NCBI GenBank assembly: GCA_002269645.1
Contig: NIVC01000168.1
Location: forward strand, 661,297 to 725,296
Length of the DNA stretch: 64,000 nt
Source: Macrostomum lignano
Taxonomy: Eukaryota
Reading direction: 5' to 3'
The notes beneath the pieces are model-generated. The model was not told the origin of the DNA. It saw only the letters and a program-made list of their open reading frames with translations, and did not search any database. A program made the translations under genes and the position numbers. Below are positions 7,160-64,000 of the stretch, in pieces (positions within the stretch are counted from its first letter, which is position 1; every line of letters starts with the position of its first letter).

Positions 7160-7220
<61 letters not shown>

Positions 7221-7369
7221 GTCTGTCTGTCTGTCTGTCTGTTTATCTGTCTGCCTGCCTGCCTGCCTGCGTGTCTGCCTGTCTGTCTGTCTGTCTGTCT
7301 GTCTGTGTGTCTGTCTGTCTGTCTGTCTGTGTGTCTGTCTGTCTGTGTGTGTCTGTCTGAGTGTCTGTC

Positions 7370-7408
<39 letters not shown>

Positions 7409-7423
7409 GCCTTTCTGTCTGCC

Positions 7424-7466
<43 letters not shown>

Positions 7467-7511
7467 GTGTGTGTCTGTCTGTGTGTCTGTCTGTGTGTTT
7501 GTCTGTCTGCC
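6906..7511. repeat. (TCTG)n/(TG)n compound microsatellite
   Basis: Read directly; explains the overlapping CLSV/TDRQ ORFs. Confidence 0.97.
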
Positions 7512-8039
7512 TTTTCCATTCCCCGCTTTCAGGATGTAGCTACAAATTTCCCGCTTTAGCGATGAAAACTGAAATGATAGAGTTTATTCCGTCAATTTGA
7601 ATTTCGCGCAGACAGATCGCGCTACAGGCTAAATAAGTTTGTTGCGTGTTTTTTTACAAATAATCGCGCAACATTTTTTCCAGTTTTCCAAGCACCCGCA
7701 ACCGGGGGAAGGGCATTAATCTCCCTATCATTTATTTCAAGTCAAGCCCCGTTTGACCTCGCAGCCGGCAACTCATCTGTTCCTGCGCCAATTCTGTTCG
7801 CGCCTGCTTGCGCGTTACTTATTTTGATGCAGCACTTTTGCCGCCATGTCCATGGAGTGCCGGATAAAGAGTCTGTCTGGAGTGAAATACACTGTAGCTA
7901 GGTGATGCTTCTGATTAATGAATATTAATGGATTTCTCTTTCGCTCAATTAATTATTGTGCCGGGAACCCGCCTGACGGGCACTAAAAATGTATTTTTAT
8001 TTATGCGAAAATTTTTGCGAGTTTTTAATTGCTGTGTTT

Positions 8040-21321: not shown

Positions 21322-21859
21322 GCTCAGCTGGTGGATCGAGCGCGGGACTTCACTGCGTTTGAGACTGCAGTCGCAGTTTAGTCTGTTTGAGCGATAATCT
21401 TCAGGACAAAGGTATAGAATGGATTGCTAATCTAGCCTACCTGCTTCTAGCCATAGATTAGCACATTCAAAGACCTGGAACCAGTGCTCACAGGCAGTTT
21501 ACGTAGCAGAATGCACAAGACATTCTTAGGCTTACATGTTACATGCAGCACAATATTTTCTTAATCAGTGACGAGTCCCCAGGCAATCAGCAGCGTTTAA
21601 CAGTTTAGTTAAGTAATAATTATTTGGAATCACTTTTGTTCCACATATTTTATTTTTCTGTTGTTATTGTGATATCAGATTCAACAGTTTATAGCTTTGA
21701 AATGCTATTTTTATCTCTATGTTGTATTTCTGTGTTAAAATCTTTTGTAGATTAAATAAACGCGTGAATCAATGTACAATTTTATCTTAACTTTAAAATG
21801 CTGGTCAATAACCACTGAGTTCCTAATATCAGAATATAAATATGAACTTCAATAATCAT

Positions 21860-21999
21860 AAATATAATAATTTATTACACCCGCCATAATGGCCAGATGT
21901 GCAACCGACAGCTCAGCCGCAGCTATTGCGCGGCGCATCTGAAGGCTGCGTACGGCTGTTCAGTCCAAGGGTCGCCACACACACACACACACACAATCA
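21860..21999 (-). mobile_element. 3' half of a SINE (same family as 17945-18258), split by a TIR element
   Basis: Near-identical to 17966-18090 (GGCCAGATGTGCAACCGACAGCTCAGCCGCAGCTATTGCGCG...GTCGCCACAC). Confidence 0.8.
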
Positions 22000-22001
22000 C
22001 G

Positions 22002-32800: not shown

Positions 32801-33049
32801 AGCAGGTCGCTGCCGCCGATGCCCCCGCATCCGCTGAGGCCCCCGCCAGCCTCTCCTCCGAGCGACAGCCTGCCGCGGCTGGGCGACGGCTGCAGAGCCG
32901 ATGACGACTGCGGCGGCGGCGACAGGACGAGCCGCGCCGAGGCGCTGAACAAATCGCTGGCGTTGGAGTCCGGGCGTTTCTGGTTGACAGGGTTGATGCG
33001 GACCTGCTGCGGGACATGATTGGGTCAGGCGGATGACAGACAGACAGAC

Positions 33050-33092
<43 letters not shown>

Positions 33093-33114
33093 GAGACAGA
33101 AAGAAAGACAGACC

Positions 33115-33211
<97 letters not shown>

Positions 33212-36200
33212 GGAGGACAGACAGACAGACAGAAGGACAGACAGACAGACAGAAGGACAGACAGACAGACAGACAGACCGACAGACTCACAATGCCGATC
33301 CCGCCAGCCGCCTGCTCCGTGTCCGAGTCGTCAGAGTCCGAGTCCGAGCTTTTCTCGCCGTTGCCGCTGAGCCCCCGGCGTCGCCGCCACTCCTCGTGGT
33401 CGCGCGCCTCGTCGCGTTCAATAAAGCCCTCAGCGTCAACCTTTGGCTCCGGGCTGGTCGGCGTTGTGGGAACGGCCGCCGGGGCGAGAGAGGCGCCTGA
33501 CGACTTCTCCTCTGCGGAATGTGGGGAATTTTATGCTCAAAAGCTTCGAATATGGGATTTCAGATAATAATAGGGGATTTCAAATATTAATATGGGATTT
33601 CACAGTCGAATAGTGGATTTTAGATTTCAAAATAGGGAAGTTCAGATTCAAATTGGGGAATTCAGATTCAAATCGGGGATTTCAGATTCAAATTGGGGAA
33701 TTCAGATTCAAATTGGGGAATTCAGATTCAAATCGGGGATTTCAGATTCAAATTGGGGAATTCAGATTCAAATTGGGGAATTCAGATTCAAATCGGGGAT
33801 TTCAGATTCAAATTGGGGATTTCAGATTCAAATTGGGGAATTCAGATTCAAATTGGGGAATTCAGATTCAAATCGGGGATTTCAGATTCAAATTGGGGAT
33901 TTCAGATTCAAATTGGGGATTTCAAACTCGAATAGGGGATTTCAAATTTGAAATAGGGAAAGAACTTCATATTCGAATAGATGATTTTACATTCGAATAA
34001 GGATTACACATCTCTAATCTCTAAGTGCTTTCAGGGAATTGTATAAATGCTTTCGTTGAAACCGAATCACAAATTCCAACCTTTTCCGGCCCGAGACAGC
34101 CGCCCGGGGATGAGGCTGGAGAAGATGTCCCGGACGCGGGTGCCGCCGCTGCCGCCCGAGCTGTCCGCCTGCTGCTGCAGCTGCTGACAGCCCGGAGTGG
34201 ACGGCGATGCCGGTGACAAAGCTGAGGAAGTGCCTGCAGATTTCTCCTCGAGAGACTGCTGGCTGTTCAGGCTGAACAGGTTGTTCAGTGACTGGTTGTC
34301 CGCGTTGGCTCCCGCGGCCGAGCCACCGAGGTCCATGAAGGCCGACAGGGACTCCTCAATCGGCTGGGGTACCTCGTCGCCGGTGCCGTTCCGCTGAACC
34401 CAGTCGGTCAGCAGGCGGTCAGCGGAGTTGTTCAGCATCTGCTCCTGGATGGGGGAGGGTGCTTGGGGTTTGAAGTACTTCCGACAAATCAGAAACCAGC
34501 TCACCAGTCTCACTCCGGACTACTGACCAATCAAAACTAGCTCATTAGTCTCCCTTCAAAGCACTGACCAATCAGAAACCAGCTCACCAGTCTCCCTCCG
34601 GTCTCTCCGGAGCACTGACCAATCAGAAACCTGTTCACCAGTCTCCCTCCGGAGTACTGACCAATCAGAAACCAGCTCAACAGTCTCTCTTCAAAGCACT
34701 GACCAATCAGAAACCAGCTCACCAGTCTCCCTCCGGAGTACTGACCAATCAGAAACCAGCTCACCAAGTCTTCATAAGGAGTACTAACCAATCAGAAACC
34801 AGCTCACCAGTCTCCCTCCGGAGTACTGACCAATCAGAAACCAGCTCACCAGTCTCCCTCCGGAGTACTGACCAATCAGAAACCAGCTCACCAGTCTCCC
34901 TCCGGAGTACTGACCAATCAGAAACCAGCTCACCAGTCTCCCTCCGGAGTACTGACCAATCAGAAACCAGCTCACCAGTCTCCCTCCGGAGTACTGACCA
35001 ATCAGAAACCAGCTCACCAGTCTCCCTCCGGAGACTGACCAATCAGAAACCAGCTCACCAGTCTCCCTCCGGAGTACTGACCAATCAGAAACCAGCTCAC
35101 CAGTCTCCCTCAGTACTGACCAATCAGAACCAGCTCACCAGTCTCCCTCCGGAGTACTGACCAATCAGAAACCAGCTCACCAGTCTCCCTCCAGAGCACT
35201 GACCAATCAGAAACCAGCTCACCAGTCTCCCTCCAGAGCACTGACCAATCAGAAACCAGCTCACCAGTCTCCCTCCAGAGCACTGACCAATCAGAAACCA
35301 GCTCACCAGTCTCCCTCCAGAGCATTGACCAATCAGAAACCAGCTCTTCAGTCTCCCTTCGGAGTACTGACCAATCAGAAACCAGCTCACCAGTGTCCCT
35401 CATACCTCGAGATTTTATTTTTTATACATTTTAAACTAAAAAAACAGGAAGTCAAACTACTAACAGTAGAAGCAACAAACCTGCAGCTGGCCTTTGGCTT
35501 CAACCAGGCGAGTCCCGGCAGAGGCGATGGGCTCCAGAAAACGGTCAACAAAGTCCAGCATCTTGGCGAGATGCTGAGTCTCCATCTCTTCGAAATAGGC
35601 GCAGGACTTCTTTGTATCCTTCAACAAAGGCGGACCTCACGCTGTTGTACTTCTCCACATTGAAGCCCAGCTCCTTCGCTGCCGACTCCAGCTTGGCCAC
35701 CGCCTTGCGCTTCTCCTTTTCAGAGGCCGCAGCGGCTGCCTCCGCCTGCTTGGCTTGGCAGGCCTGGCGCTTGGCCTGCACCTGTGCTGAGAATGTCTTG
35801 ATGGAGGCGCTGCTGGCCTGCGTCTTCTGGTGCTCGCTGTCCTGCTTTGGACTGTCAGACTGAGGGTCTAGCGGAATGGGCAGGACTGCCTCGGCTGGTT
35901 GTGGGACCATGTTGCCGAAGGCGCTGCGCCAGGGTGCCTGCAACCCTCCAGCGAATATATTTTTAGGGAGCCTTTGGAGACAGTAAAGGTTTGTGTGAGA
36001 ATTTGCGTTGCCAAATTGGATCCGAAATGTCGAAATGGAGGAGATAGCTGTTTTATTTGCATATTAAAAAATTAACTCGTCAGCAAGCTACCATAAAATA
36101 ATAGACGATTTATTGAAAAGTTTTCAAGTGGCAATGAGGTCATCAAGAATCTGTGCACCAATGCATCTCCTGCCCCTCTCCCCTCATGTGTAGAGCCCTT

Positions 36201-41023: not shown

Positions 41024-43271
41024 TTACGAGTTGGGCAGCAACCGGTCAATCTTCTGGAAGATTTCCACCACCTCCTCGTACCTGGTCACGTAAGACTCTC
41101 GCATTCTCTTGTGCGCGTACTGCAGCTGCTCCAGGTTGTTGCTGAACCTTGCGAACAGGTAGTACTCAAGGAAGTCGGCGCTCTGGTCTTCCTTCAGCTC
41201 ACTGAACCAGTCATCGATGCTCTGCAGGTCCGGCAGCAGCACCGCTCGCAGGCACTTCAGCAGACAGTCGAAGTTCATGTAGAAGGCCGTCTCATTCGGA
41301 GCCACCCTTGCAGGAAAATACTTGGCCAGGTCGAGAGTGTCGCCCTTCTCTCTTCTGAAATCCGACAGGAACTTCAGTTCCGGTCGCTTGTCGCTGTGGA
41401 AGCAGTGCTTCCAGGAATAGTCGTTCGTGTAGATCTCCGCCTTGATGTGCGACCGAGTGACATCACACTTCTGATCACTAGACAGCTCAGAGGGAAATGA
41501 TAGCCATCGCCTCACTCTGTGTTTAGCAGAGCTGCTCAAAATCTCTTTCGCTGAGTCAATATCGTTTCTGCTCAGTCTGTACAGCACTTTCAAGCCCTCA
41601 CGAACTGAGAAAGCATAGTCCGGCATCTTAGCAACGAAACCCTCCATCTCTTTGAAATTAGTACCGTGGGACATGTCAGTCAACGAATTCTCCATCAGTC
41701 TTTGAATGTCTGCGTAACTTTGCAGTGGTAAAGCTACAGAAGTCCTCAGTGGGTAGAAGTATGGCATGATCGTAAACGGATGGTAGTAGAATCTTTCCAG
41801 GTATTCTCGACGTTCGTCAGCGTTTCGCTTTATTTTCTTAAGGTAGTCATTTACGTGTTTATTTAGATTTTTAATGAGACTCTCGACGCTCTCGATGACC
41901 TTCTGTTTGTTTGCAGTGTCTCCTTTAAGATAAAGCTTTGCATCCTTGATGAAGAAGTGTGGCATGCACTCAAAGCCGCTCGCGCCTGTATCTTTCATTT
42001 TGATGAGCAAGAAAGAGAGCGACTCCTTTAGGAGATGAAACAGGTTGGATCCTTTCCATTGCTCTCTACTCGTCCGTTTGATCATAAAGAATAGAAGAGT
42101 TTTTGCATGGTAAGACTTCAAGCCTGGCGCTTCTCTTGACACGACTTCTCTTAGCAGATACTTGATCAGTATGAATAGCTGCCCTTGAACAGGGAGCAAT
42201 TGCTTCATGATTTCCCTTTCGAGGAAGCTTGTGCTGATTCGCAGCTCTTGCGCGACCGGCTTCGCCCTGTTAGAATTATCGGTCTCTTCAGATACAAAAG
42301 TTTCCTCGTGTTTTTGTTGAGCTCGGATAAGATGAAGGCTATAAGATAGTTTTTCATTGTCCGCAGGTAGAGAAATTGCTTTCCTTATACTGGGTCTGAG
42401 TTGTTCTCGTATTTTTAGTGTTTGCATCAGTGACTTTAACGGCTGTTCCGGAAGTCCCATCTCTAGTTCTCCTTCAAACAGTGACTTTCTCTGTTGCACG
42501 CTGTCCGTACGATTCATTTGTTCAATTCCGAAGCCCTCAGCGTAATTTCCACCCTCCAGCTTCTTCATTGCATTCAGCGTAGATTCGGAAAAGCAACCGG
42601 GATTTTCGAAGACGTCGATAACATGAATTGCACAGCAGCGAAAGGCAGTGCACTCGTCGATGGAGGGCCTGAGCTCGGATTTCATCGTTGTTTCCGCTGG
42701 GTTTGATTCTGAAAATGTTGAGTTTAATTACTTAAAAAGCATTAACATTATCTTTTTATCCTAAAGTGAGGAAAAAATTTACCATTGGCCTGATGTCTTT
42801 CTAAATACAGGTGTTGTAGGCTGCAGAAGTTTACAGAGTGCATCTACTCCAATTTTAGCGAATAGTAAAGTAAACCTACCAGTATTGCTGCATTTGATGT
42901 GCCCGGCAGAACATTCGTACTTCTTATCGATGCCCTTGCAGTCGCAGCCTTCAATGTGAAAAACTTCAGTCTTAACAATATGCGTGAAGTCAACATCCGA
43001 CACATCAAAAATGCCGTTGATGCAGTACAAGTTGGATCCCCAGCCGTCTGCGAAGCTGCCAGTTACTTCAATTTCGGTGTTCAGCTCTGCTATGAGCTTT
43101 CCATGCAGCTCGGCAACACAGCGCTGGAAAAATGCCCTTTGCAAGGTTATTCCAGCCTGCAGCATTGCCTGATGAAGTGTTTCATTACCAATAAATTCAC
43201 TGCGAGTGTCTTCAGAGTTCTCCATATTGCTAATGTCAGTGGAAGAGCCACCGTCTTGCCTTTCACCAGCA
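41024..43271 (-). CDS. cGLR/Mab-21-family nucleotidyltransferase exons plus C-terminal helical extension
   Basis: VTGSFADG...SDVDFT (GS and DxD motif) and [10 protein letters not shown] (third acidic residue). Mab-21 C-lobe motifs [34 protein letters not shown]...L, CMPHFFI. Confidence 0.85.
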
Positions 43272-46200
43272 CTGTAAAGTAATAATCACAGGGTCAATTC
43301 GATATTGGTAATTTTCTGATTGTCTTTGGGAAAAAGAATTTCTACTTTTGGTATTGATACTTTTTTGCCTGAGCGTGAAACATTTTCACCTGTCTTACTT
43401 CGCCTCCCAACTCTGCCCATATTAGAAAATTAAAGTAAAAAGAGATAAGGAAGATAAATCCATTAAATCAAATGAATAACAATTTGGCATACCTGTGAAA
43501 CTTATTCGGCTTAAGAGGGTCATCCAAGGGAAGCTGTTCAAGTAGAGAAGAGACGAATAAACGCTTGTGCTTTCTTGCCAGCAGTAATGCTTGGTGGATT
43601 GCACTTTCATTCGACTGATTTTTGATCGTTTCTCTTATTGCTTGAATCATTTCTGGACGCTCGAAAATCGTGATTAGTTTCAATAAGTCATATCCATTAT
43701 TATTTACTGCTTGCAATGATTCTTGGATGTTTCCAAGCCGTTTTAAAATGGGCAGCTGGCCAGAAATCACCGCATGCATTGCCGCAGTGTTTCCATTAGC
43801 TTCCTTGACATTTAGATCTGGCCTGAGTTTAAGTAGAGCGTCAACACAGCCGACATGGCCATATCGTACAGCCAGCATCAGTGCGGTCATTCCGCCATTG
43901 TTTTTCATGTCAATGTATCTTGGCTCTTTTGAAACTGGAGTATCACCTTTTTCGCCCAGCAGGCTCACAACTTTGGCATGGCCATTCTGAGCGGCAATCA
44001 TGAGCGGCGTCATTCCGTACTGGTCTTGCTGCTTCAGCTCAGCTTTGTACTCAATTAGCAGTCTTGCAGTGTTATAAAACCCTGAACACGAGGCCATGTA
44101 CAAAGCTGTCTGCTTGTCCGAATTCATTTCGTTGACATGCGCTCCAGCTTTCAGGAGAATAAAAGCGATTTTGTGGTTTCCTCTTCCACATGCGTCTATA
44201 AGTAGCGTGTTATTATTCTTGTCTCTGAAATTCGCCCGTTCTTCTGTATTGATGAACTTTTTTGCATATTGAATATCATTATCTGTCATTGACGTCGTTA
44301 ACAGCGAATAGTCTGATGGTGTTGCACCAGCCTGGCGCAGCAATTCTGCGATTCTTGATGCCGGGTCAACTACGCTCAGAGCTGACTGATCTGAATTATT
44401 TCGAGTGTCGACATTCGCACCCGCCCTGATCAGTCTCTGGACTATTTCTGTGCGCCTATTAAACGCAGCGGTAAAGATCGGGCAACAGCCATTTTTTCCA
44501 GCCAAGTTTATATTTGCTCCACAATCGATAATATGAGCTGCAATGGCTGTGTGACCTTTTTGACAGGCGATGTGTAGGGCTGCGGCTCCGTCAGATCTCT
44601 GTGCGTCCAGTTCTACTCCAGCGTCCACTAGGATTCGCGCTAGTCGCTCATTTTCATGAAAGCACCAAAAAGTCAGAGCCGTGTCTCCTTCTGTAGTTTG
44701 AGCACTTGTATCAGCTCCGCACACAATTAGAAAAATGGCAAGCTCAGTGTGTCCATTTGCTGTTGCTCTGTGGAGTGCCGTGGATCCTCCCTTTCCAACC
44801 TTATCGATATCATCACCGATATTCCAGAGAACTTCTACAATTTCCTTGTTCCCAAGCTGCGCAGCCAGATGCAATGCGGAATCTCCATCTTCATCTTGAA
44901 TTTCATAATCTGCCCCTGCGTTGATCAGTACCTTGAAAATTTCCAGCAGTCCGCGAAATGCTGCGTGTCCAAGTGCAGTAATTTCATTCTCATCTTTTTG
45001 GTCCAGCTCAATTTTCGCATTAACGAGTTCCTTCACGACTGCAACATTTCCTGAACTAACCGCTAGATGCAGGGCTGTGGACCTATCCTTCGTCTTCGCG
45101 GTCAGACAGGCACCGACGGAAATGAGCATCCGAACGACTGACAGGCTGCCATTGAGTGCCGCGAGAAGCAAAGGAGTTGAGTTATTTTTGCCAGGAAACT
45201 CTAAATTTGCCCCGGCGGAGATGAGTAACTTGGCAATTTCTGTATGCCCACACTGAGCAGCTAAGTGCAAGGCAGTCGCTCCATGACAGTCTCTGATATC
45301 AACATCAGTCCCAGCTTCGATTAATGTCTTAACAATCTTAAGGTGACCAAAGTATGCGGCCATAATTAAAGGCGTATCTCCGTCGCAATCCTGCACGCCT
45401 GTGTCAGCTTTTGCATCAACCAGATGATTTACAATTGAATCCGAACCCAGGGCAGCAGCAATGAGAATAGCAGTTTTTCCATCAACAGCTTGAGTATTTA
45501 CTAAGCAACCACTTTGAACTAGAAACCGCAAAATTTCTTCGTGCTTGTTAGCCGCAGCAAGAATGAGCGGTGTCGCCTGACCTTTGCCCTGTGAATCGAT
45601 TTCACAGGAGGATTTTACAAGCATCTTCACAATCTCTAGAAATCCGTTCTGAGCAGCCGAATGGAGTGCTGTTCCGTTATTCGAGTCTCTCACATTCTGA
45701 TCAGCGCCCACATCAAGCAGCAATCGAACAACGGCTTCCTTGCCAAAGTAGGCTGCCACTATGAGTGCCGAGTTGCCGTCGCTGTCCTGCTTGTCAACTG
45801 AGGCCGTTGAAGCCACCAGAAGTTGTACAATTTCAACATTGCCGTTCAATGCTGCAGCAATCAATGCAGTCTTACCCTGTACAGCCACAGAATCTACAGC
45901 AGCATTTTTATCAAGAAGAAGCCTCGCAACCAGTTGATGGCCATTTTGGGAGGCCAGAATCAGTGGTGTAGCCTGACCTTTTCCTTTGCTATCAATTTCA
46001 CTCCCAGCATCCAAAAGCATTTGGACGATTTCGTAGTGACCACTTTGAGCTGCCATGTGAAGTGCTGTGCTGCCGTGCTCATCTCGAATGTTGACACTCG
46101 AATCCGCGTTAAGAAGCATCTGGATTACTTCTGCATTGTTGATGAACGCAGCGGACATCAATGCTGTTCGCCCATCAAAAGCTTGAAGATCAGTATTCGC

Positions 46201-49200
46201 TTGCTTACTGAGCAATATTTTCAATACAAAAGCATGGCTATGCATTGCAGCCAGCATGAGTGCAGAATATCCATCATTATTCACCGCGTCAATCGAAGCA
46301 TTATTTTCCAACAGTAGCTGGGCCACGTCTCCACGTCCATTTAGAGAGGCCCGAATCAGAGGTGTTGTTCCATTCTTGCCAATGGCATTTACTTTGGCTC
46401 CATGTTCGAGCAGAAATCTAGCGATCTCAGCATGCCCATTTTGAGCAGCAACATGCAGAGCTGTGCATCCGTTTCGGTCTCCGTGATTGACATCAGTTTC
46501 ATCAGTAATGAGTAGCGAAATGATTGCAAAGTGTCCGGAGTACGCAGCTCCTATAAGCGGAGTGTCACCTTCGTGGTTTTTCAGACTGGGATTCGCTCCA
46601 TTTGAGATCAAGAGCTCAACAATTCTGTTGTAACCAAGCAGTGAGGCGTAGAACAAGGCCGTATTACCCATGAGATCCTGTTGATTCACATGGGCTCCAG
46701 CCAGCAGAAGCTGAACTGACTCATGGTGACCCATGCAGCTGGCAAGGATGATCGGAGTCGCATTTCCTTTCCCGATGCAGTTTATGTCAGCGCCTTTGCT
46801 GATGAGCCATTTTATCACGTCTGTGTGGCCCGCCTGGGCTGCGAGTAAAATCGGCGTCGCCCTCTCGTTGTCTGCGGCGTTAACATCTGCAGATTCACTG
46901 ACTAGCAGCTCAGCGATGTCTATTCTATTGAGTAGGGATGCTAGCAGAATGGGAGAATGGCCGTGCTTATTCTTTACATTCGGGTTCGCCCCCGCAGCCA
47001 GAAGTAGCCGTGCAATTTCGAGCGATGAGACGAATACTGCGTAGAAGAAGGCTGTGTTGCCCTTATTGTCAGGTAAGTCAACTTTGGCGTTTTTGGAAAG
47101 CAGCAGCTCTACGCAATCTTTATGCCTACAATATGTGGCGAGTAGCAACGGTGAATCTCCGTCATCGTCAACAATGTTTACATCAGCTTGACGCTCAATC
47201 AGAAGTTGCACAACCTCGAAGTGCCCACGAGTTGCTGCCAGCGTTATGGCGGCTGCACCGCCTTTACCTCTGGAGTTGATATCAGCGCCGGATTCTAAAA
47301 GCAGCTTCACAACTTCAACGTGACCATTTTGTGACGCACAGTGTAGTGAGTTGTGCTTTTCATTGGCGACAGCATGAATATTGGCCTGGCGCTTCAGAAG
47401 CAAACGGACGATTTCTACCTGACCATCGAATGCACTGCAAATCAACGGCGTCTCTCCAGCGTCATTTGGTAAGTTGGGATCAGCTTGGTTCTCCAGCAAG
47501 CACTCAATGACCTCAATATTTCCGACAGCTACAGCCGCCAGGAGCACAGACTGGTTGCCTAAACTTTTACTCTGCTGATTGACGTTGGCACCCATCGAAA
47601 CAAGCAGGTATGCAATATCCGGGAAATTCTTGAGTACAGCCAGATGCAAAGCACTCACTCCATTTTCATCTTGATGGTCGATGTATACAGTCTTAGCCAG
47701 TAGCATTTCGACTGCTTCAAAGCAACCAGAGTAGCTAGAAAAAATTAAAGCTGAGCTACTCTGAGAGTTCGTCAGATTCACGTCTGCACCGGAAGCTAAC
47801 AGCTTGTTCACCAGGTTAGGGTGTCGGTTCAGACATGCCAGCATGAGCGGTGTGCCTCCATTTTTCCCTTTTGAATTCACGTCTGCACCAGCTAGCACAA
47901 GTTGGCTCGCAATCTCAAGGCTGCCAACTTGAGCAGCACAATGCAATGGCTGAACTCCCTCTTTTGAGCAAATATGAACATTTGCACCCTTGTCAATCAG
48001 TAGTTTTACAGAGGCCGCCTGATTTGCCATTGAAGCGTACTGAAGCGCGGTGTCCCCATCCGAATCTTGTAGGTTTAGCTTTGCCCCTGCTTCAGCCAGC
48101 ATTTGAACAACGGTGATGTTTTTAGTCGTACTGGCCGCCATCAATGCAGTTTTTCCTTCCGGGTCTTGGTGATTCACTTCCGCTCCAGCACTGATGAGTA
48201 GCTCAACGATTTGAGAGACATCGTCGATGCTGCCTCTGGCACACACAGCAAACAGGCAGCTGAGTCCGTCAGCATTTCTAATATTGACATCCGCTCCGGA
48301 CTGCACAAGTAGCTTCAAAATTTCAAGCCTGTTGTGAATGCATGCAAGCAAAGCAGCTGTACACTTGTTCTTTCCAAAGGTGTTCACATCGACCATCGCG
48401 GCAGCAAGCATTTTCACTATGGGAAGGCAGCCCTGTTGAGTAGCACAATGGATTGCTCGACATCCTTCCTTATTTGGAATTTCCAAATCCGCTCCTGCGC
48501 CGATGAGCATCTCAGCGCATCTCACTCTGCTGAAGTAAGAAGCGCAGTTCAGTGCCGTGTCCCCATCCTGGTCTTGTTGATTAACGTTTACACCAGCATT
48601 AAGAAGCACTAAAACAATGTCATCGAAGCCCTGAACTGATGCCAAAATGAGGGGCGAATGCATATCTGAATCTAAAACGTTCGCATCAGCAGAGTACATC
48701 AGTAGTAATTGGACAATGTCGGTGAATCCTGCCATTGCTGCAACAGTCAATGGGAACTGACCAAACAATCCAGATTTATCTGGATCCGCCCCAAACGAAA
48801 GCAGCTTCAGAACTGCATCCGTGTTGTGCAGGGCACATGAAGTGAATAAAGCAGATAATCCAAAATCACTTGAGTGGTTAACGTCCACCCCTGACTCCAA
48901 GATCAGACTCAGTGTTTCGACTGACCCGCTGACAGCTGCCAAGGTCAAAGCGGAGTCGCCACTATCGTTTGTAGCGTGAGGGTCGGCACCCACAGACAGC
49001 AGCTCCTTGACTATGTCAGACCTTCCATGAAGGGACGCAATCGTAAGCGGAGTGTTTCCATTCTTTCCTCTGATTTCGAGCGCTGCTTCAGCAAGCAAAA
49101 GCAAAACGAGAACCTCGTAGTGACCATTCTGAGCCGCCATGTGCAGAGCAGTTGATCCATGACTGTCTCTGAGATTCGGATTGGCGCCAGCTGACAGAAG

Positions 49201-52200
49201 CAGCGCGGTCGCCATCAGCTGGCCCGTGTAGGCGGCCAGAATAAGGGCACTATGTCCATCCTCATCCTGGTAGTTCACGTCAGCACCAGCCAGCAGCAAG
49301 TCTGAAGCGATTTCAAAGTGGCCTTGAATGCTGGCTAAGATAAGCGGTGTTCCACCTCCCTTTCCGATCCAATTGACATCAGCTCCTGCATCAATCAGTA
49401 GAGAAACGATTTCTCTGCGGCCGTTCTGAGCAGCGAGAAGTAACGGAGTTGCGAGTGTGCCATCGACATAGTTCGGATTTGCGTCAGCTTCCAGCAACAG
49501 CTTGACAACAGCCAGGTGACCGGAGTAGGCAGAGTGGGTGAGGGCTGCTCTTCCCATGCAGTCGCATGCGTTAACATCAACACCCTTCTTGATGAGCAGG
49601 TTCAAAACATCGTCACGACCATTGCCAGCCGCAACAATGATTGGTGTGGCGTCACCCTTGCCCACATGCTCGGTGTCTGCTCCAGCCTCAATCAACTGCT
49701 CGGCAATACTCAAATAACCATTCTGAGCAGCGCAAGACAACGCTGAGCCTCCTTCGTTATCCGATGGGCTCACCAACGCCTGAGCCTTCAGTAGTGCGAC
49801 CACTATTCTCTCAAAGCCTAAGAAAGAAGAAATAATTAGTGGAGTATTTCCTTCGTCATCTCTTGTTTCAACATCTGCTTGCGATTTGAGCAGCAATTCA
49901 ACGACATCCGAGTGACCATTCTGAGCAGCAAGATACAACGGAGTTGCTCCTCCTCTACCCCTCGTTTCAATACAGGCTCCAGCATGCAGCAGGTCTCTGC
50001 AGAGCTCCACGTGTCCGATTTGAGCAGCCATTATGAGAGGCGTTGCGTTCTGATAGTCCGGCATATCGACATTGGCTCCGGCCTTGATCAGCACTGCTGC
50101 GGTGTCTCTGTGCCCGCTCTGAGCTGCGAGTCGCAATGGAGTTCCATCATTTCTGCCCTTCCAGTCTACATTCGCACCTGCACACAGCAGGGCATCGCAA
50201 ATCTGCGAGTAGCCGCTCTGAGCTGCGAAAATCAGCGGCGTCGCTCTTTGAAAGTCGGCTGCGTCCACCTCGGCTCCAGAGTGCAGGAGCAGCCGTGTGA
50301 CCTCCAAGTGACCCTCAGCTGCTGCGAAATGAAGAGCCGTCTTTCCCTCGATATTCGTTTTGTTGATCTCTTCCGGCTCGCTGCTCACGATAAACTCCAC
50401 ATCTTGCAGGTTTCCACTCCATGCAGCCTCCATCAGTTGAGTTCTCTGCATTCCTGAGAATAAGTTACTGAGCTGGGTTTGAAGCTCAGAAACCTTCTGC
50501 TTTGGCTCTTCAGCCTGAGGTCCGTACGGTCTGGACCTGAACTTTGGAGCCCGCAAATTGGCGTAAGTCTGCAGACTGACCAGAATCGCGCTGCTTCTGG
50601 TCTCAGCCGCCAAATCAAAAATCGAGTTTCCACTGCTGTCAAAGACGTCGGCCTCTGCTCCGGCCTCGAGCAGCTGCTTCACCACAGCCTCTCGACCTGC
50701 TTGCACAGCGAGCCACAGCGCCGTTCTCCCGAAGCCGTCCCGGTCTTCCAGCAGCTCCTTGGTATGCGCCAACTGGCTGACGATCTCCTCGTGTCCGAGC
50801 TGCGCGGCCATCATCAGCGGTGAGCAGCCGCCTTCGTTGGCGATCCTCGGGTCGGCACCGGCCCGCAGTAGATGAGCGGCGATCTCGCGGTGTCCCTCTT
50901 GACAGGCGAGCAGCAGCGGGCTTGTTGAGTCGTTCTGCAGCAGATTCACATCTGCACCGGCTTCAATCAGGTGAGCAACAACATTTCCGTGCCCGGTCTG
51001 AGCGGCTGCACTCAGAGGCGACGTCCCAAACTCGTCCTGGACGTTGATGCGAGCACCTCGATCCATCAGTAACTTCACGATTGCCTCGTGTCCATTTTGA
51101 GCAGCCATTATCAGAGGTGAAACAGGCTTTTCAGGAATCTCAAGATCTGATCGTTTGCTCATCATCAGAGTGAGCAGTTCCTCTCGGCCGAGCTCGCATG
51201 CTGTGATGACCTGCCAGGTCAGGTCTGCATCGCTTGGTGCGCACTGCAGCACCATCTGCATCAGCTCAAGCTCATCGTCTCTCAAAAATTTCTCCATCAG
51301 TTCGTCGAAGGTTTGCAAATCAAAGAAAGGCGAATCTGTCTTCTGAAGAATCAACCGCGCGACATTCACGTGACTTCCTCGGAGAGCCGCTAGTAGAGCC
51401 GTCTCTACCTGATCGTTCCTAACGTCCAGTGGAGCTGAGACATCAAGTAGAGTGCGCACTACATCTTCATGGCCAGCTCGGGCTGCCAGCACTAGTGGTG
51501 AGTCTCCATCTGCGTCGGTATCGTCAGGATCAAAACCCGCTTGAAGAAGTTGGCGCACTCGGTTCAAACGCCCGATGCTGCCCGCGACGTGCAGCTCCGT
51601 TTGGCCTTTGCTATTTCGTCGGGGCGTAGCCTTTGCTTCTAAAGTTGTAGATTTGTTGGAAATTACTAGTAAAGTACATGTAGCAGTACTTTGGACTCCA
51701 TCTCTTAGTATTATCTCTTCCTACCACCTCCCTATCCGTCCATATTCCCTTCTTCTCATCGCAGCCTTCATCCATTAGTTGTATATTTTCTTTTAATCTT
51801 TATCGAACGCTGCTTAATTAATCATCTGGTATTCCTGCACTTCCTGAATTTACGATACTAGAATATGCACTGCGTACCCGGGGCGCAACGCAGGTGGGAG
51901 TGCAAACAGTTTCGATTCGTCAATGTGAAAGTTTACACACGAGATGACAAATCTTCCCTTTTTTCTTAAGTTGCTTTTTCCCAACGCGTCTTAATTTGGT
52001 GCCAGGTATGTTAAAATTTAGCTTCTGATCAGCAATCTAGTGCCCCCTTCGGGGCGTGCCCAATAAGCAAGGAGCTAAAAATCTTACCAACCACTTTGGA
52101 AAACTTTGGAAAACTGCTTTTGCGGTGGGACGCTTCTATTCTTTATTCTGTACTAGCTGATTCTTCACACAAACGTACAAATTTACACAGAATGAGTTTT

Positions 52201-54810
52201 TTCTGGATGGATTTCACAGAGCTAGCTTCAATTTTCAAGACAGTACTCTGCATAAGTGTGAAACAATTCCTTTGCGTAGCTACTGCTGATAGTTTCCGGA
52301 AAAATCGAGCTTCTTAAACTTTCTTTACATTTATACTTAATAATATATCTAATTCTTATTACTTGCATTTTCTGTCAGTTGCAGAGAGCTATCGAAACTC
52401 GACGTACAGTTTTTGGCACGTTTATGGAGCCGAAAAAAGTCAATTGCCAGTCAAGGTAACTCGAGGCGTTTTCAAATCTTTCTGCCACCCACCCATTCTC
52501 TTAATCTTCAGGATGGAGAATTCATGAAAAACAAGCATCATTATAATCACTCATATAATCACGATACCCGCGAGTGTCAGCAGCCTCCCCTGCCCTCGCT
52601 CTCGAGCTGTTGTCTGTTGCTGGGCGCAGCTCCCCTTTTCCGTCTGCCTGCTCTGCGCTTGTGTGCAGTGTGCAACCCTGCCCCGCCTGCCCAGCCTGCC
52701 CCGCCTGCCCCGCCTGCCCCGCCTGCCCCGCCTGCCCCGCCTGCCCCGCCTGCCCCGCCTGCCCCGCCTGCCCCGCCTGCCCCGCCTGCCCCGCCTGCCC
52801 AGCATGTCCCGCCTGCCCCGCCTGCCTAGCATGTCCCGCCTGCCCCGCCTGCCTAGCATGTCCCGCCTGCCCCGTCTGACAAGTGGCTGATAAGATCGAC
52901 AATCGCTCTTTGTCGATCTTATCAGCCACTTGTTTGCAACCACTCGGCATCTTTGCCTGTGGCTTGCTCTTGGTTCACTCTTTGTCCAACGGTCACTGGT
53001 GTTTTCACTAGTAGCTCTTTGTTTCCCTTGTCACATGATCTTGTCGCATGCGGTCTGAGAGGAGGAAATGCAGCCCGAGAGGAGGGAATACAGCCTGAGG
53101 GGAGGGAATACAGTCCGAGAGGAGGGAATACAGTCTTATAGGAGGGAATACAGTCTGGGAGGAGGGAATACAGCCTGAGAGGAGGGAATACAGTCTGAGA
53201 GGAGGGAATACAGCCTGAGAGGAGGGAATACAGTCATATAGGAGGGAATACAGCCTGAGAGGAGGGAATACAGTCTTATAGGAGGGAATACAGCCTGAGA
53301 GGAGGGAATACAGCCTGAGAGGAGGGAATACAGTCTTATAGGAGGGAATACAGTCTTATAGGAGGGAATACAGTCTTATAGGAGGGAATACAGCCTGAGA
53401 GGAGGGAATACAGCCTGAGAGGAGGGAATACAGCCTGAGAGGAGGGAATACAGCCTGAGAGGAGGGAATACAGTCTTATAGGAGGGAATACAGCCTGAGA
53501 GGAGGGAATACAGTCTTATAGGAGGGAATACAGCCTGAGAGGAGGGAATACAGCCTGAGAGGAGGGAATACAGTCTTATAGGAGGGAATACAGCCTGAGA
53601 GGAGGGAATACAGCCTGAGAGGAGGGAATACAGTCTTATAAGAGGGAATACAGCCTGAGAGGAGGGAATACAGTCTGAGAGGAGGAAATACAGTCTTATA
53701 GGAGGGAATACAGCCTGAGAGGAGGGAATACAGCCTGAGAGGAGGGAATACAGCCTGAGAGGAGGGAATACAGTCTTATAGGAGGGAATACAGTCTGAGA
53801 GGAGGGAATACAGTCTGAGAGGAGGGAATACAGTTTGAGAGGAGGGAATACAGTCTGAGAGGAGGGAATACAGCCTGAGAGGAGGGAATACAGCCTGAGA
53901 GGAGGGAATACAGTCTGAGAGGAGGAAATACAGTCTTATAGGAGGGAATACAGCCTGAGAGGAGGGAATACAGCCTGAGAGGAGGGAATACAGCCTGAGA
54001 GGAGGGAATACAGTCTTAGAGGAGGGAATACAGTCTGAGAGGAGGGAATACAGTGAACAGGCAGTTGTAGAGTGTTCTACCTCCCGTTAAAAAAGGATAA
54101 AAGAAGATAATCGTATAATGCTACTATAAGTAAGTAAGTACACGCATGTGTGCCTAAGCTTTGAATGAATCACGCTACCAGGAAAAGATGTTACCAAAAT
54201 GATACGCCATGAGCCATTTTCCCCTTTTAGCGCAACACGTTGATTGTAATGATGCTATTTTGGATCAAAAAGTTGCCTATAAATACAAGCGGTCCGAAGC
54301 GGACCAGGAGCCAACTCCCGACTCCCGACGAGAGGAGAAGCTCCGAAGAGGAAGCCTTAGGAGGACTTCCTGATCAACCAAGTCAATTGAGATCTTAGGA
54401 GACTATCAGTGGTTTCCGGAGCCATACCTAGAGTGCATAGAGGCACTGCTAGAAGAAGGAGGCTTAATTTAGACCGCAGTTTGGCGCAGGGATCCCATTG
54501 TTAATTCGGAAGCTTCCCATTGGTCCGAGCGACAGAATCCGGCACATCACAGTTTAAGAGAACAGATGTACACAGCCAATGCTCAGATGCTCGTGACCTT
54601 GCGTTTCAAGGGCTTCAACTCTTCCTCCAAATTGAATTGGCACTCTATACTCGTACAAGTTGGCCTCAATACTCTTTGACGTAGACACATCTCATTAAGT
54701 AGCAGCCGCAACAGACTCACCTCGCTCCCCCGGGTCCGAATTCTCATCAGCCTCCATGCTGGAGGACGCCGCTGCCGAGGAGGTGGACTTTTCGTGCTGT
54801 TTCAGTTCTG
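41024..54810 (-). CDS. Giant ankyrin-repeat + cGAS-like receptor (cGLR/Mab-21 nucleotidyltransferase) fusion, about 3400 aa
   Basis: Exons 54810 (or ATG 54757)-54721, 51638-43493, 43271-42880, 42708-41024. Junctions: CGA G|GTGAGT...ACTTTAG|AA (phase 1); CAC AG|GTATGC...TTACTTTACAG|T GCT (phase 2, in frame with MENSED); ACT G|GTAGGT...CATTTTCAG|AA TCA (phase 1). From ATG 54757 the CDS is 10260 nt, or 3419 aa plus stop. The ankyrin-to-NTase junctions are well supported; the first exon is less certain. Confidence 0.8.
43493..51638 (-). CDS. 8.1-kb single exon encoding about 75-80 ankyrin repeats
   Basis: Continuous 33-aa G-x-T-[PA]-L-x-x-A-A-x-x-G-H...LL-x-x-GA-[DN]-V-N repeats over about 2700 aa. 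The frame extends upstream of the track's TTG start ([12 protein letters not shown]) to an acceptor at 51639. Confidence 0.93.
52678..52875. repeat. 9-bp GC-rich repeat (GCCCCGCCT)n
   Basis: Read directly. Confidence 0.93.
52879..52933. other. Perfect 24-bp inverted repeat with 7-nt loop
   Basis: ACAAGTGGCTGATAAGATCGACAA-TCGCTCT-TTGTCGATCTTATCAGCCACTTGT. Confidence 0.95.
53075..54053. repeat. 20-bp minisatellite (GGAGGGAATACAGCCTGAGA)n
   Basis: About 49 copies with CCTGAGA, TCTTATA and TCTGAGA variants. Confidence 0.96.
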
Positions 54811-61308: not shown

Positions 61309-64000
61309 ATGGTCAACAAGTGCTCTGCAGTCGGCTGCAAAAGTGGATACACAAGTTTTGCAACTGCTGAAACTGTTACATTCCATTCTTTTCCACTGAG
61401 CGACCCAGACTTGCTAGAAAAGTGGAAGAAATCGATTCCCAATCAAAACTTGGAGCCAACGAAGTACATGCGAATTTGCTCATTGCACTTTTCGGAGCAA
61501 GATTTCGTTGAAACGTCTCGGGACTCCTTTGGCACCTGGCGCAAGAGGGACAGCAGCACGCTTAAAAAGCGATATCTGAAGCCCGATGCTGTGCCTACGA
61601 TTTTTCCGAATGCACCAAAGTATCTGTCAACGCCTCGACAACCGGCGCGAACTACGTGTGCAGCGACATCCTCTGCTCGACTCGACTTGGACAATATGCG
61701 TCTTCAGAGTGAGATCGAAGACTCAATTCTCGATCGCACACCCGTGGAGATTCAGGAGTTGCTCGATGCAGAGCAGAGCCGACCTGCTGGATTTCACACC
61801 AGCATCTGCGACGGCCAGTTGTGTATTTACATGCTGGATGTGAAGCCAGTCTGCCGGATTGCTTGTTCCATCTGCATTGACTCCGATCATAAAGTCTCTG
61901 TCGGTATCAACGGCTCCCCGCTGTCGAAGGACAAGGTGACCGATTTTGCTGGTACCGAAGGCGTGATTTCTATTATTAGTGCGCTGCTGAATCTTATGGC
62001 AAAGGTAAAGAACTGGAAGGAAAGCACTAATCTGTCTGAGTCGCCCGAGCAGGCTAACGGCTTCCTCGACTTGGCAGAGGATAGCCTAACAAATGTGCTC
62101 GAACGGAAAGAAGACAGATCTGTGGCATTTCTTCTGGAGCAGCTGCAGCTCAGTAGGACTAAAAAGGCAGCAAGAGTCTACTCTCAAGAGCTAATAGTTC
62201 TAAGCTATATGATTTGCTCCATCAGCACCTCCGCTTACAATGCTCTGCGTGAGCAAGAAGTTCTTCCCCTCCCGTCAGTGAGAACGCTGCAAAATGTCAC
62301 CAGACGAGTTGGACGGGATGGATTGAGTAGCCACGGCTACCTGCGCCTTCGAGCAAGTAAGCTGACTCAGATGGAGAAGGTGGTGCTGCTAATGGTGGAT
62401 GAGATTTACATAAGCCAACCGAATCCAATACTGCGCCGGGCAAGTACGCGGAGTCGATGAATGCGGAGCGATTGCTACAACGTACTGCTGCGTCATGATT
62501 AAGTCCATTGCTGGGAAGTACAAGGACATGGAGCAATGCATGCTGTGGCCAACTTAACAGCCAAGAAGCTTCACACTTGGTTTCAAGATGTGATGGAACT
62601 GCTGCGAGCTTTGCATTTTACTGTGATTGCCGTCTCACTTGACAATGCTGCAGTCAATCGTAAATTCGCCACTGACTACATCTGCGACGGAGAGCTCAAG
62701 ACCTCGGTCATAGACAAAACCCCGGGTCAGCCGATGTTCGTTTTCTTCGATCCTGTGCACAACCTCAAGAACATCTACAACAATTTCCAAGTCAGAAAAA
62801 ACTTCCAATGTCCCGCCTTTCCACCTGTTTTGCTGCGCACTTGTGAGGCACAGTTTCAGCAAATCACTGATCTGTAGAATATCGAAGCCTGCAAAACAGT
62901 GCGACTGTTTCACAAGTTGAGTCCAACTGTAATCAGCCCCCGAAGCATTGAAAAATCATCCGCGAAGTTGGCAGCGGCGGTTTTAGCGAGTCAACACGCG
63001 ACGCGCTCAAGTACTACTCCGATCACGAATGAAAGGACTGGACCGACACCGCAGAAAATTCATCGGCGCTGTGCTTAAGCTCTGGAAAATTCTTAATGTC
63101 AAGACGGTATCAAAAGGCCGGCGAAAGCGCGACATAAATCAGGATCCTGTGCGGTCATCTCTCGACTGGAAGCTTCAGTATCTGGAGGAATTCAGCGAAT
63201 TTCTTCAGGTGAGGAAAAGAAGAGAACATAAGTGTACTTACAGTACAACCAAAATAGGCCAAGTAGAGTAGAGTAGGGTATATATACTTATATAGTATAG
63301 TTTACTTTAAATAACGGACGTCTTAGTATAGTAAAAGTATATGACAAGAAAAAGAAAAGCCAGTTTAAAATTCTTTTTCATTTCACACACATAATTTCAG
63401 TCTTGGGTAACTTCCGGCAGCCGCGGCTTGTCCAGGTAGACCTTCCTGGCTTGTCGCCATACCTGCCGAGCTATCGCTGCCTTTGCGAGGCACCTTCTGG
63501 ACCGTGAAGACTTTTCCTACGTCCTACTCGGCGCCCTGCAGTCCGACAGCATCGAGCACAGATTTGGTTGGCTTCGCCAGATGTCTGGAGCGAACTATTT
63601 CATCTCGGCCAGGCAGCTCTCCGAGAGCAACCGAAAGATCGCAGCTATCAGTTGCTCAAGTTCTCGCAGTTTTCGCTCCACGATATTGACCGTGCAATCG
63701 CTGAGTCGACTTATTTTCCTGATGTTGAGTCCAACATGAAGAAACTGGCTCAGGAGATGGCAGCAAAAATGGAGATGACTTTTCAGCCCGGAGAATCCGA
63801 CTGCACTGTCATCTACTACATGAGCGGCTGCATCGCAAAGAAGCTTCTGCAGAACAGGCGTGGCTGCGAGTCCTGCCGGGAGCTTCTGCTTGAGTCAGAT
63901 GTTCTGCCTCCTCTTGAAGCAGATGCTCCGGTCCAGTCCGCTGCCTCCAATTTTATTGACGAGATCAATCGCGGCGGGTTGTCCAAGCCGGCTGCAATTG
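61309..64000 (+). pseudogene. Decayed THAP-domain P-element (THAP9-like) transposase, truncated by window end
   Basis: THAP domain (CSAVGC...FHSFP...W...ICSLHF...LKPDAVPTIF). Transposase motifs SAYNALR...LPSVRTL, LMVDEIYI, SLDNAAVN, FDPVHNLKNIYNN, LQSDSIEHRFGWLRQMSGAN, YYMSGCIAKK, INRGGLSKP. Frameshifts near 62420 and 62535, in-frame stops at 62875 and about 63437, and a GT-AG intron at 63209-63400. Confidence 0.88.

Follow-up and report, generated by a model that had tools for sequence, protein, structure and literature searches.

The ligand is still to be found for most animal cGLRs. We know of no cGLR fused to ankyrin repeats that has been characterised, nor of a ligand, product or function assigned to one. 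Such ANK-cGLR fusions are recognised as a minor architecture by Li et al. 2023 (bioRxiv 10.1101/2023.02.22.529553 / PMC9980059, Fig. 1C, S2A, Table S2), and Table S2 lists Macrostomum lignano proteins of the same family as the gene described here. For the biochemical screen of that study, constructs were made from two of these M. lignano proteins, PAA86972.1 and PAA45980.1, with the ankyrin parts left out; in the available tables neither is flagged as active, and the Note column, which marks active enzymes, is blank for PAA86972.1 (PMC9980059). The main text, which covers the active enzymes, does not mention Macrostomum, and the genus has no entry in the per-species table (supplement 5) in its available form (PMC9980059). 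In the parasitic flatworm Schistosoma mansoni, both cGAS and STING have been reported as lost (PMC4117786).

The gene analysed here lies on the minus strand of a 64,000-nt stretch of M. lignano DNA (the window). The original prediction for this locus had put forward the fusion of ankyrin repeats to a cGLR as a candidate new architecture, a claim that is not supported, as ANK-cGLR fusions, including the M. lignano family, are already in Li et al. 2023. The kind of fusion is known, and it is the size of the ankyrin part that stands out.

Gene model

The three minus-strand ORFs from which the fusion had been predicted are present, at 43468-51567 (2699 aa), 42779-43225 (148 aa), and 41024-42685 (553 aa), and when joined they give 10,152 nt with no internal stops. 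The two introns proposed between them have GT..AG ends and matching phases (AG|T at intron 2, G|AA at intron 3). With a predicted 5' exon the model comprises four phase-matched exons (Table 1), whose open frame of 10,260 nt contains no stops and encodes a predicted spliced product of 3,419 aa without interruption, in line with the single protein of ~3400 aa originally proposed. The 8.1-kb open frame is far above chance, because an ORF of length 2699 would arise by chance with a probability of (61/64)^2699, or ~1e-56, by simple arithmetic. Introns 2 and 3 are both 32% GC, whereas the adjoining exons are 47–50% GC.

The added 5' exon contributes 37 coding nucleotides (twelve residues plus a G) from an ATG at 54757, and its donor, G|GTGAGT after 54721, agrees in phase with the acceptor before 51638. 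It is preceded by an AG acceptor at 54812-54811, possibly a cis or a spliced-leader acceptor, and the outer limit originally given for the gene, 54810, is the base next to this acceptor. Intron 1 contains two tandem repeat tracts. All the joins, that of exon 1 above all, are predictions made from the sequence.

Table 1 Positions of the predicted gene features within the window
Feature	Position	Strand	Remarks
Predicted exon 1	54721..54810	minus	sequence inspection and script; phase 1, as at the exon 2 acceptor
Intron 1	51639..54720	minus	3,082 nt, 48% GC; least certain join of the gene model
Tandem repeat in intron 1, 20 bp x 50	53055..54053		
Tandem repeat in intron 1, 9 bp x 22	52677..52878		
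Exon 2	43493..51638	minus	single 8,146-nt exon, aa 13-2727; nearly all ankyrin repeats and start of linker
Unbroken 60-repeat ankyrin run	44398..50349	minus	aa 443-2426; HMM built from the protein's own repeats
Intron 2	43272..43492	minus	221 nt, GTATGC...TTACAG, phase 2; inside the ANK-to-NTase linker
Exon 3	42880..43271	minus	linker and NTase N-lobe; G-S motif 43060-43055, D-V-D catalytic pair 42997-42989
Intron 3	42709..42879	minus	171 nt, GTAGGT...TTTCAG, phase 1
Exon 4	41024..42708	minus	third catalytic Asp, insertion, Mab-21_C, C-terminal extension; stop 41026-41024
Third catalytic Asp (in RPSID)	42656..42658	minus	
Gene-specific insertion	42335..42622	minus	~95 aa, after the third catalytic Asp
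Mab-21_C (PF20266)	41882..42175	minus	
C-terminal extension	41027..41767	minus	~247 aa

A Macrostomum family of ANK-cGLR proteins

An HMM search returned 90 family representatives at E < 1e-30, and all 30 of the named strong matches that we sampled were from M. lignano. Family members share the motifs GSFAEGWGNSL, LRVS[FT]SFLE, GLK[ST]YHAKTL, CMPHFF, and FYFHPF, together with a tail of ~250 aa after Mab-21_C, and most of the members listed have ankyrin and Mab-21_C Pfam domains together in one product. The closest sequence to the predicted protein is a 114-aa M. lignano fragment, 96% identical to its C-terminus; this fragment excepted, identity to other family representatives is at most 34%. 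The representative P0064, whose cluster contains PAA45980.1, aligns with the 3,419-aa protein over 653 residues (E = 2e-56). Among the other paralogs are fusions with caspase, kinase, and RING/B-box domains, which, as judged from these domain assignments, may give the family an immune-like character. We found no paralogs elsewhere within the window, and for P0003 the encoding contig was not found on record.

The NTase is predicted to be a competent cGAS-like enzyme

The assignment of the NTase as a cGLR/Mab-21 domain in the original prediction was borne out, in that Pfam, profile-profile comparison, and Foldseek agree on a cGAS-like fold in which the catalytic residues are kept. Mab-21_C matched with E = 9e-8 and 32.6 bits, against a curated cut-off of 24.1. 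A profile search of PDB sequences ranked cGAS best (E = 5e-6), with Sp-cGLR1 at E = 4e-5 and MAB21L1 at E = 0.015, and in hhalign against a set of cGAS and cGLR sequences the probability was 97.6% (E = 3.9e-12), with 170 aligned columns that take in the third catalytic Asp. For structural comparison we used an AF2 model of 427 aa built from a 21-sequence alignment (pLDDT 74, pTM 0.79). It replaced an earlier model of 692 aa from an 8-sequence alignment (pLDDT 61), in which the N-lobe was disordered and for which Foldseek matched just 140–155 columns (E ~0.01). All 50 of the best Foldseek matches of the model used, searched against the PDB, were Mab21-family structures, among them mouse cGAS (E = 3.6e-5, full-length alignment), MAB21L1, and Cv-cGLR1 (TM 0.52, target-normalised), with TM-scores that are modest, at 0.4–0.5. 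In this model the NTase adopts a cGAS-like bilobal Mab21 fold, and the PDB profile ranking together with the tables of Li et al. places it probably nearer to cGAS and the cGLRs than to the MAB21L or MiD branches.

The catalytic set GS...DxD...D is intact, as a 15-residue stretch plus RPSID. hhalign pairs RPSID with the ISVD motif of cGAS, the Asp of which we take to be D319 in human cGAS numbering. Across 21 diverse family sequences, the G and S are conserved in 21 and 20, the Asp pair of DxD in 20 and 18, and the third Asp in 17. The N-lobe also contains a family-specific conserved H-x3-C-x-C...CC cluster. We considered whether the insertion of ~95 aa that is specific to this gene could be a missed intron and rejected this, as it has no canonical in-frame GT..AG candidate and its GC content is exon-like. 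The C-terminal extension of the original prediction is present, and is family-specific and helical; in the alignments the protein ends where its homologs end, that with P0002 stopping within 4 residues of the C-terminus. Searches of this extension against Pfam and PDB sequences gave no matches, and Foldseek gave only TPR/PPR-like matches of low probability.

An alternative that we find unlikely is that the gene is a single fusion whose Mab21 domain does not signal but, like that of MAB21L1 or MiD49/51, only binds nucleotides or serves a purely structural purpose. The large ankyrin scaffold around it would then work outside immunity, for instance in organising the cytoskeleton or membranes. The Foldseek scores for MAB21L1 and cGAS are about equal, and two of the catalytic Asp are lost from P0013, a paralog fused to a kinase (SDIGW, RSAQS), so the fold can persist without catalysis. 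Two paralogous NTase constructs were also not flagged as active in the available tables of Li et al. (PMC9980059); however, as described there, these constructs were without the ankyrin part and the ligand set was limited. Against this reading, the protein has the complete set of GS, the two Asp of DxD, and the third Asp, and the retention of these residues in 17–21 of 21 diverse paralogs argues for selection on catalysis. Furthermore, the profile fits cGAS and cGLR1 better than MAB21L1.

Linkage of the ankyrin and NTase parts

The ankyrin and cGLR parts are predicted from the sequence to belong to one polypeptide. The in-frame stop of the raw ankyrin ORF (43470-43468) falls within intron 2, and single BLASTP alignments with M. 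lignano homologs span the last ankyrin repeats, the linker, and both junctions. Because the linker is poorly conserved, alignment across the ANK-NTase junction is weak evidence on its own, and the same feature is compatible with two genes, in which the ankyrin ORF would end at the stop at 43468 and a Mab21 protein would start from the ATG at 43225 on a separate mRNA, produced by spliced-leader trans-splicing at the 43272 acceptor of an operon-like unit. In M. lignano, polycistronic precursors, each with several trans-splice sites, make up about 7% of the transcriptional units (PMC5730564), and as these are resolved by trans-splicing, an operon boundary at the ANK-to-NTase join is conceivable; the 148-aa ORF also starts with an ATG of its own, 46 nt beyond the acceptor. 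However, the donor at 43493/43492 (CAG|GTATGC) is canonical, phase and frame are preserved across the intron, and none of the 8 poly(A)-signal variants that we sought was found in the 221 nt of intron 2. The co-occurrence of ankyrin and Mab-21_C domains in single products of most listed family members argues in the same direction, as does the gene structure of the paralog P0004 (locus L001, NCBI GCA_002269645.1), in which a phase-2 intron interrupts the corresponding linker, matching intron 2, and a phase-1 intron lies at the position aligned with intron 3 (GHAQVAVGA|G-SQPA vs GHIKCSNT|E-SNPA). We take GCA_002269645.1 with its BOX15_Mlig locus tags to be Mlig_3_7, and thus the P0004 model to be transcript-derived. 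The Mlig_3_7 annotation derives from RNA-seq, with spliced-leader and poly(A) sites used as cutting points (PMC5730564). We therefore regard two separate genes as improbable.

The ankyrin array

The exceptional feature of the gene is the size of its ankyrin array. An HMM built from the protein's own repeats finds 74 in the whole protein, so that the giant array of the original prediction, estimated there at about 75–80 repeats, stands. The Pfam Ank families match the last 510 aa of exon 2 with E = 1e-77. Among 191 family matches the maximum is 18 repeats, which makes the 74 found here an outlier. We looked for other giant arrays among very long M. lignano family proteins, but P0054 (3379 aa), P0028 (2381 aa), and P0041 (2111 aa) each have a few repeats plus other domains.

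The repeats are on average ~34% identical in pairwise comparisons (maximum 77%), with a weak 4-repeat periodicity in the C-terminal half of the 60-repeat run. Because they have diverged, the array is neither a recent amplification nor an assembly collapse. When the N-terminal 470 aa were searched against the protein database, all matches were to generic ankyrin proteins, with ~30% identity; the ankyrin part thus appears to be absent from the database, and there is therefore no independent gene model for it. This absence, and a window rich in mini- and microsatellites, might suggest that the gene is decaying into a pseudogene or that the array was inflated in assembly, but with 10.26 kb of open frame, intact catalytic and structural motifs, and repeats too dissimilar to be one unit collapsed or duplicated in assembly, we consider this very improbable.

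Proposed function

We think it probable that the gene belongs to a Macrostomum-specific ANK-cGLR expansion, in which it is divergent and unusually large, and that its cytosolic product combines a 74-repeat ankyrin solenoid, a catalytically competent cGLR NTase, and a helical C-terminal domain restricted to this family. Once activated, the NTase would make a nucleotide second messenger, by analogy with characterised cGLRs. The protein-protein contacts that control when the NTase fires would come from the ankyrin array, which might capture a ligand, serve as a scaffold, or be autoinhibitory, and the signal might then be read by a STING-like or other receptor. In the original prediction, too, the solenoid was a possible sensor, guard/decoy, or autoinhibitory scaffold. 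If ankyrin contacts decide activation, a protein or an assembly would be a likelier trigger than naked nucleic acid. The pI of the NTase core, which is near neutral (6.7–7.3, compared with 9.07 for the human cGAS catalytic domain), gives only a hint that the trigger is something other than nucleic acid.

A more speculative extension, which we hold to be doubtful, is that the 74-repeat solenoid is the true sensor, capturing or being restrained by a protein or polymeric ligand, possibly pathogen-derived or cytoskeletal, and in this way gating the attached cGLR. The gene would then be one arm of a Macrostomum-specific family that mixes a Mab21 core with ankyrin arrays of varied length and with caspase, kinase, or RING effectors, possibly independently of STING. 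If this were true, such sensor-solenoid proteins would be a cGLR-based counterpart of the modular immune receptors of the NLR type.

The gene is an extreme case of the ankyrin-fused cGLR architecture. RNAi is in use in Macrostomum. Transgenesis has been established in M. lignano (PMC5730564). An extreme architecture in an animal with both tools therefore offers a workable start for studying how fused repeat domains contribute to signalling by cGLRs. Given the loss reported for Schistosoma mansoni, the gene could also show whether a free-living flatworm has any cGLR pathway, and the size of the family and its caspase and kinase fusions may be of wider interest than the single gene.

Comparison with known systems

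The catalogued ANK-cGLRs (PAA86972.1, PAA45980.1, PAA58690.1, and others from M. lignano, and those of Stylophora pistillata) have the same order as the protein described here, with N-terminal ankyrin repeats followed by a Mab21/cGLR NTase. The P0064 cluster also has in common with it the GSFA[ED]GWG...SD[IV]D...RPxxD motifs and the C-terminal extension. Differences from the catalogued proteins lie in the length of the array and in the extra insertion of ~95 aa.

The protein resembles cGAS and the cGLRs (mouse and human cGAS, Sp-cGLR1, Cv-cGLR1) in its predicted Mab21 fold and its GS / [DE]x[DE] / D active site, and the WRLSFS-like, SYH.KT, and FIP-like motifs are conserved in both. However, it is ~10 times larger, with ~13% identity in structural alignments, and its NTase core is near-neutral rather than basic. 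The zinc-thumb arrangement of cGAS is missing, and the H-x3-C-x-C...CC cluster is found in the N-lobe instead. MAB21L1 and MB21D2 match in fold and were both among the top Foldseek matches, but compared with MAB21L1 the flatworm profile fits cGAS better, and its catalytic residues are all kept. In MiD49/51, to our knowledge, the catalytic set is incomplete and second-messenger synthesis is not known. For none of MAB21L1, MB21D2, and MiD49/51 do we know of a demonstrated part in cyclic-dinucleotide signalling.

Long ankyrin solenoids provide the remaining comparison. Ankyrin-R/B/G have 24 repeats and NOMPC has 29, and like the flatworm protein they have canonical 33-residue repeats in long unbroken runs, which by analogy would be expected to form a superhelical spring or scaffold here as well. 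With 60 contiguous and 74 total repeats, the flatworm array exceeds them two- to threefold in length, and its partner domain is an NTase, in contrast to the channel or spectrin-binding module of these proteins.

Gene model

The original prediction had assembled three minus-strand ORFs within 41024-54810 into one protein. All three were found (2699, 148 and 553 aa), and they do join in phase, through two introns whose junctions we read base by base, into 10,152 nt without a stop. Ankyrin (ANK) repeats fill nearly the whole length of the 2699-aa ORF, the 148-aa ORF carries a nucleotidyltransferase (NTase) signature ([10 protein letters not shown]…SDVDF), and the 553-aa ORF matches Pfam Mab-21_C above its curated cut-off, at E = 1.9e-7 on its own and 9e-8 once spliced. 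The ankyrin frame is open to 51720, upstream of its first start codon, and no ATG was found in this upstream stretch. A predicted exon 1, which starts at 54810, the outer coordinate of the original prediction, directly after an AG, gives a full predicted model of 3,419 aa. Because sequence signals are its sole basis, exon 1 is the weakest piece of the model.

Features of the window, with coordinates on the forward strand
Feature	Position	Strand	Details
Predicted exon 1	ATG 54757; donor after 54721	minus	donor G|GTGAGT; pairs with phase-1 acceptor before 51638
Repeat array in intron 1	53055-54053		20-bp unit x 50, 90% matches
Repeat array in intron 1	52677-52878		GC-rich 9-bp unit x 22
Unbroken ankyrin run	50349-44398	minus	
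Intron	43492-43272	minus	GTATGC…TTACAG, phase 2, codon AG|T split
H-x3-C-x-C cluster	42955-42970	minus	H88, C92, C94 of 427-aa core
Intron	42879-42709	minus	GTAGGT…TTTCAG, phase 1, codon G|AA split
CC pair	42634-42639	minus	C138-C139 of 427-aa core
THAP ORF	61309-62460	plus	383 aa, N-terminal THAP zinc-finger domain, E = 8.8e-18
LRR-like ORF	3520-5190	minus	556 aa, signal-peptide-like start, probable transmembrane segment
GC-rich stretch	14000-22000	plus	54-61% GC, several long ORFs
Long mini-/microsatellite arrays	6737-7560, 9470-11086, 16653-17572, 18951-20094, 32571-33500		

The ankyrin ORF and the NTase might instead be two genes, the NTase mRNA being trans-spliced, and about 7% of M. lignano transcriptional units are polycistronic (PMC5730564). 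Several observations support the joined model, and the two-gene arrangement is unlikely. Eight poly(A)-signal variants were looked for in the 221-nt gap that follows the ankyrin stop, and none occurs there. The GC content of the two short introns is 32%, compared with 47-50% in the exons. BLASTP against M. lignano proteins returned single HSPs that extend collinearly from the final ankyrin repeats into exon 4, covering the linker and both junctions; that of the family protein P0003 spans query positions 38-448 (E = 9e-40), with the junctions at 292 and 423. Furthermore, the gene of the paralog P0004 (locus L001, NCBI GCA_002269645.1) has introns that match those of the window in phase: a GC-AG, phase-2 intron lies within its ANK-to-NTase linker, and a phase-1 intron at GHAQVAVGA|G-SQPA falls on the position aligned with the window junction GHIKCSNT|E-SNPA. 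We therefore favor, as the best-supported reading of the sequence, a single gene predicted to encode a giant ANK-cGLR of a Macrostomum-specific family, and these data establish the anatomy of the window gene as a predicted model.

The accession and BOX15_Mlig locus tags of L001 are presumably those of the Mlig_3_7 assembly. Gene models of Mlig_3_7 derive from transcripts that were assembled from RNA-seq and cut at spliced-leader and poly(A) sites mapped by experiment (PMC5730564). If the L001 annotation is that of Mlig_3_7, the ANK-Mab21 fusion in paralogs has transcript support. The P0004 linker exon also contains an 81-nt in-frame intron (L001 4018-4098), whose retained sequence is similar to the matching stretch of the family protein P0008, a sign of either alternative retention or allelic gene models.

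Fold and active site of the NTase

The assignment of the NTase to the cGLR/Mab-21 group was borne out by Pfam Mab-21_C, by cGAS/cGLR profile matches and by Foldseek. Among PDB sequences, the best matches to a profile made from the window protein and seven homologs were cGAS (E = 5e-6) and coral Sp-cGLR1 (E = 4e-5), ahead of MAB21L1 (E = 0.015), and a 21-sequence family profile aligned to a small cGAS/cGLR alignment over 170 columns (97.6% probability, E = 3.9e-12). In this profile alignment RPSID falls on the cGAS ISVD motif, the Asp of which we take to be D319 in human cGAS numbering, and the other pairs are HLIRA on [15 protein letters not shown] on WRLSFSHIE, SYHAKT/SYHVKT and PHFF/NYFIP. 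A first AF2 model of the region was poor; a second, of 427 aa (pLDDT 74, pTM 0.79), gave full-length Foldseek matches, and the top 50 were all Mab21-family structures, among them mouse, pig and human cGAS, MAB21L1, Cv-cGLR1, MB21D2 and MiD51 (best E-value 3.6e-5, TM-scores up to 0.52). The G-S, D-x-D and third Asp are all present in the window protein, and the G, S, Asp, Asp and third Asp positions are kept in 21/21, 20/21, 20/21, 18/21 and 17/21 diverse family members. Together these results establish the Mab21 fold and the conservation of the active site in the window protein.

At 6.7-7.3 the pI of the NTase core is close to neutral, while the catalytic domain of human cGAS has a pI of 9.07; a high pI has been tied to nucleic-acid-sensing cGLRs (Li et al. 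2023, PMC9980059). This is a weak hint that the trigger might be something other than nucleic acid. A helical region of ~250 aa, conserved family-wide, follows Mab-21_C, and no Pfam or PDB match was found for it. An H-x3-C-x-C cluster in the N-lobe is likewise conserved family-wide and, with a CC pair that follows the third catalytic Asp at seven residues, may make up a putative zinc site, at a position other than that of the cGAS zinc thumb.

In our proposed mechanism, the NTase would make a nucleotide messenger, the ankyrin solenoid would supply a regulatory or ligand-binding surface, and a receptor for the messenger would exist. Loss of cGAS and STING has been reported in Schistosoma mansoni (PMC4117786).

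The ankyrin array

We counted 74 ankyrin repeats with an HMM for which repeats of the protein itself served as seed, so that the giant array stands as predicted while its size falls just below the ~75-80 proposed. An unbroken run holds 60 of the 74 (aa 443-2426). Pairwise identity between repeats averages ~34%, with a maximum of 77%, and a faint 4-repeat periodicity is seen in the C-terminal half. Because the repeats have diverged, the array is old and maintained; the same divergence rules out recent amplification, and also an assembly artefact, as its source. In 191 sequences matching the NTase core of the family, repeat counts reach 18 at most, which makes the window array, at ~4x the size of that in any examined relative, a notable one. 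Where other M. lignano family proteins are very long, further domains and not ankyrin repeats account for the length. A protein database search with the N-terminal 470 aa did not find the ankyrin part.

The Macrostomum family

The named strong matches are all from M. lignano, and weaker relatives include an annelid sequence. An exhaustive HMM search returned 753 representatives at E ≤ 1e-3, 90 of them with E < 1e-30, indicating a large lineage-specific expansion. The C-terminal 109 residues of the window protein have 96% identity to a 114-aa M. lignano fragment (UniRef A0A1I8J5X5), and the window protein shares at most 34% identity with any other family representative. Duplicated blocks at ≥95% identity are known in the published M. 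lignano assembly (PMC5730564), and we take the window to be from M. lignano or a very close relative.

Several family members carry further domains. P0029 (PAA59752.1), P0325 (PAA80948.1) and P0041 (PAA93319.1) combine a cGLR-like core and ankyrin repeats with a C-terminal caspase (Peptidase_C14, E about 1e-25 in the NCBI M. lignano gene models), and if these models are real an NTase sensor would be physically coupled to a cell-death protease. P0013, fused to a protein kinase, has lost two catalytic Asp (SDIGW, RSAQS) and probably retains its Mab21 domain as a pseudo-enzyme. RING/B-box/Tudor (P0025, P0028), WSC+RING or AAA_33/Zeta-toxin-like domains are found among P0025, P0028 and P0333. With its caspase, kinase and RING/B-box/Tudor fusions, the family resembles a repertoire of modular receptors for immunity or cell death, although some of these fusion models could be uncut polycistronic units.

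Other features of the window

GC content in the window ranges from 32% to 61%. Several reading frames of both strands are open across its satellite arrays, yielding spurious ORFs; examples are (SVCL)n/(DRQT)n and ~45 copies of a 10-aa unit. The THAP ORF is probably transposase-derived. The 556-aa ORF has a weak leucine-rich-repeat match, under the Pfam cut-off, and may encode an LRR surface protein. The GC-rich stretch, in which one ORF matches DUF4495 weakly (E = 0.0012, under the cut-off), is probably a multi-exon gene broken up by minisatellites.

Comparison with known cGLRs

Single-domain proteins make up 87% of cGLRs, some cGLRs have TPR or ankyrin repeats as added modules (Fig. 1C, S2A, Table S2), and those of S. 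pistillata include fusions to ankyrin repeats and death domains (Li et al. 2023, PMC9980059). The interpretation as a cGLR fusion protein holds, but the claim of a new architecture does not, since ANK-cGLR fusions, including the M. lignano family, are already in the tables of this survey. Among the entries of its Table S2 are M. lignano proteins with Ank_2 (PAA86972.1, PAA45980.1, PAA58690.1, PAA68676.1, PAA68216.1 and others) and RefSeq proteins with ankyrin matches past residue 2,000, e.g. XP_027209269.1, so very large ANK-containing cGLR entries have been catalogued as well. PAA86972.1 and PAA45980.1 were cloned as samples 89 and 90, in NTase + C-terminal constructs; the active-enzyme Note column is blank for PAA86972.1, and Macrostomum is absent from the main text, which describes active enzymes (PMC9980059). 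The family protein P0064, whose cluster holds PAA45980.1, aligns to the window protein over 653 aa. The architecture and the M. lignano family were therefore already catalogued, without functional explanation, and the M. lignano ANK-cGLRs of Li et al. are like the window protein both in their Ank + cGLR architecture and in their family.
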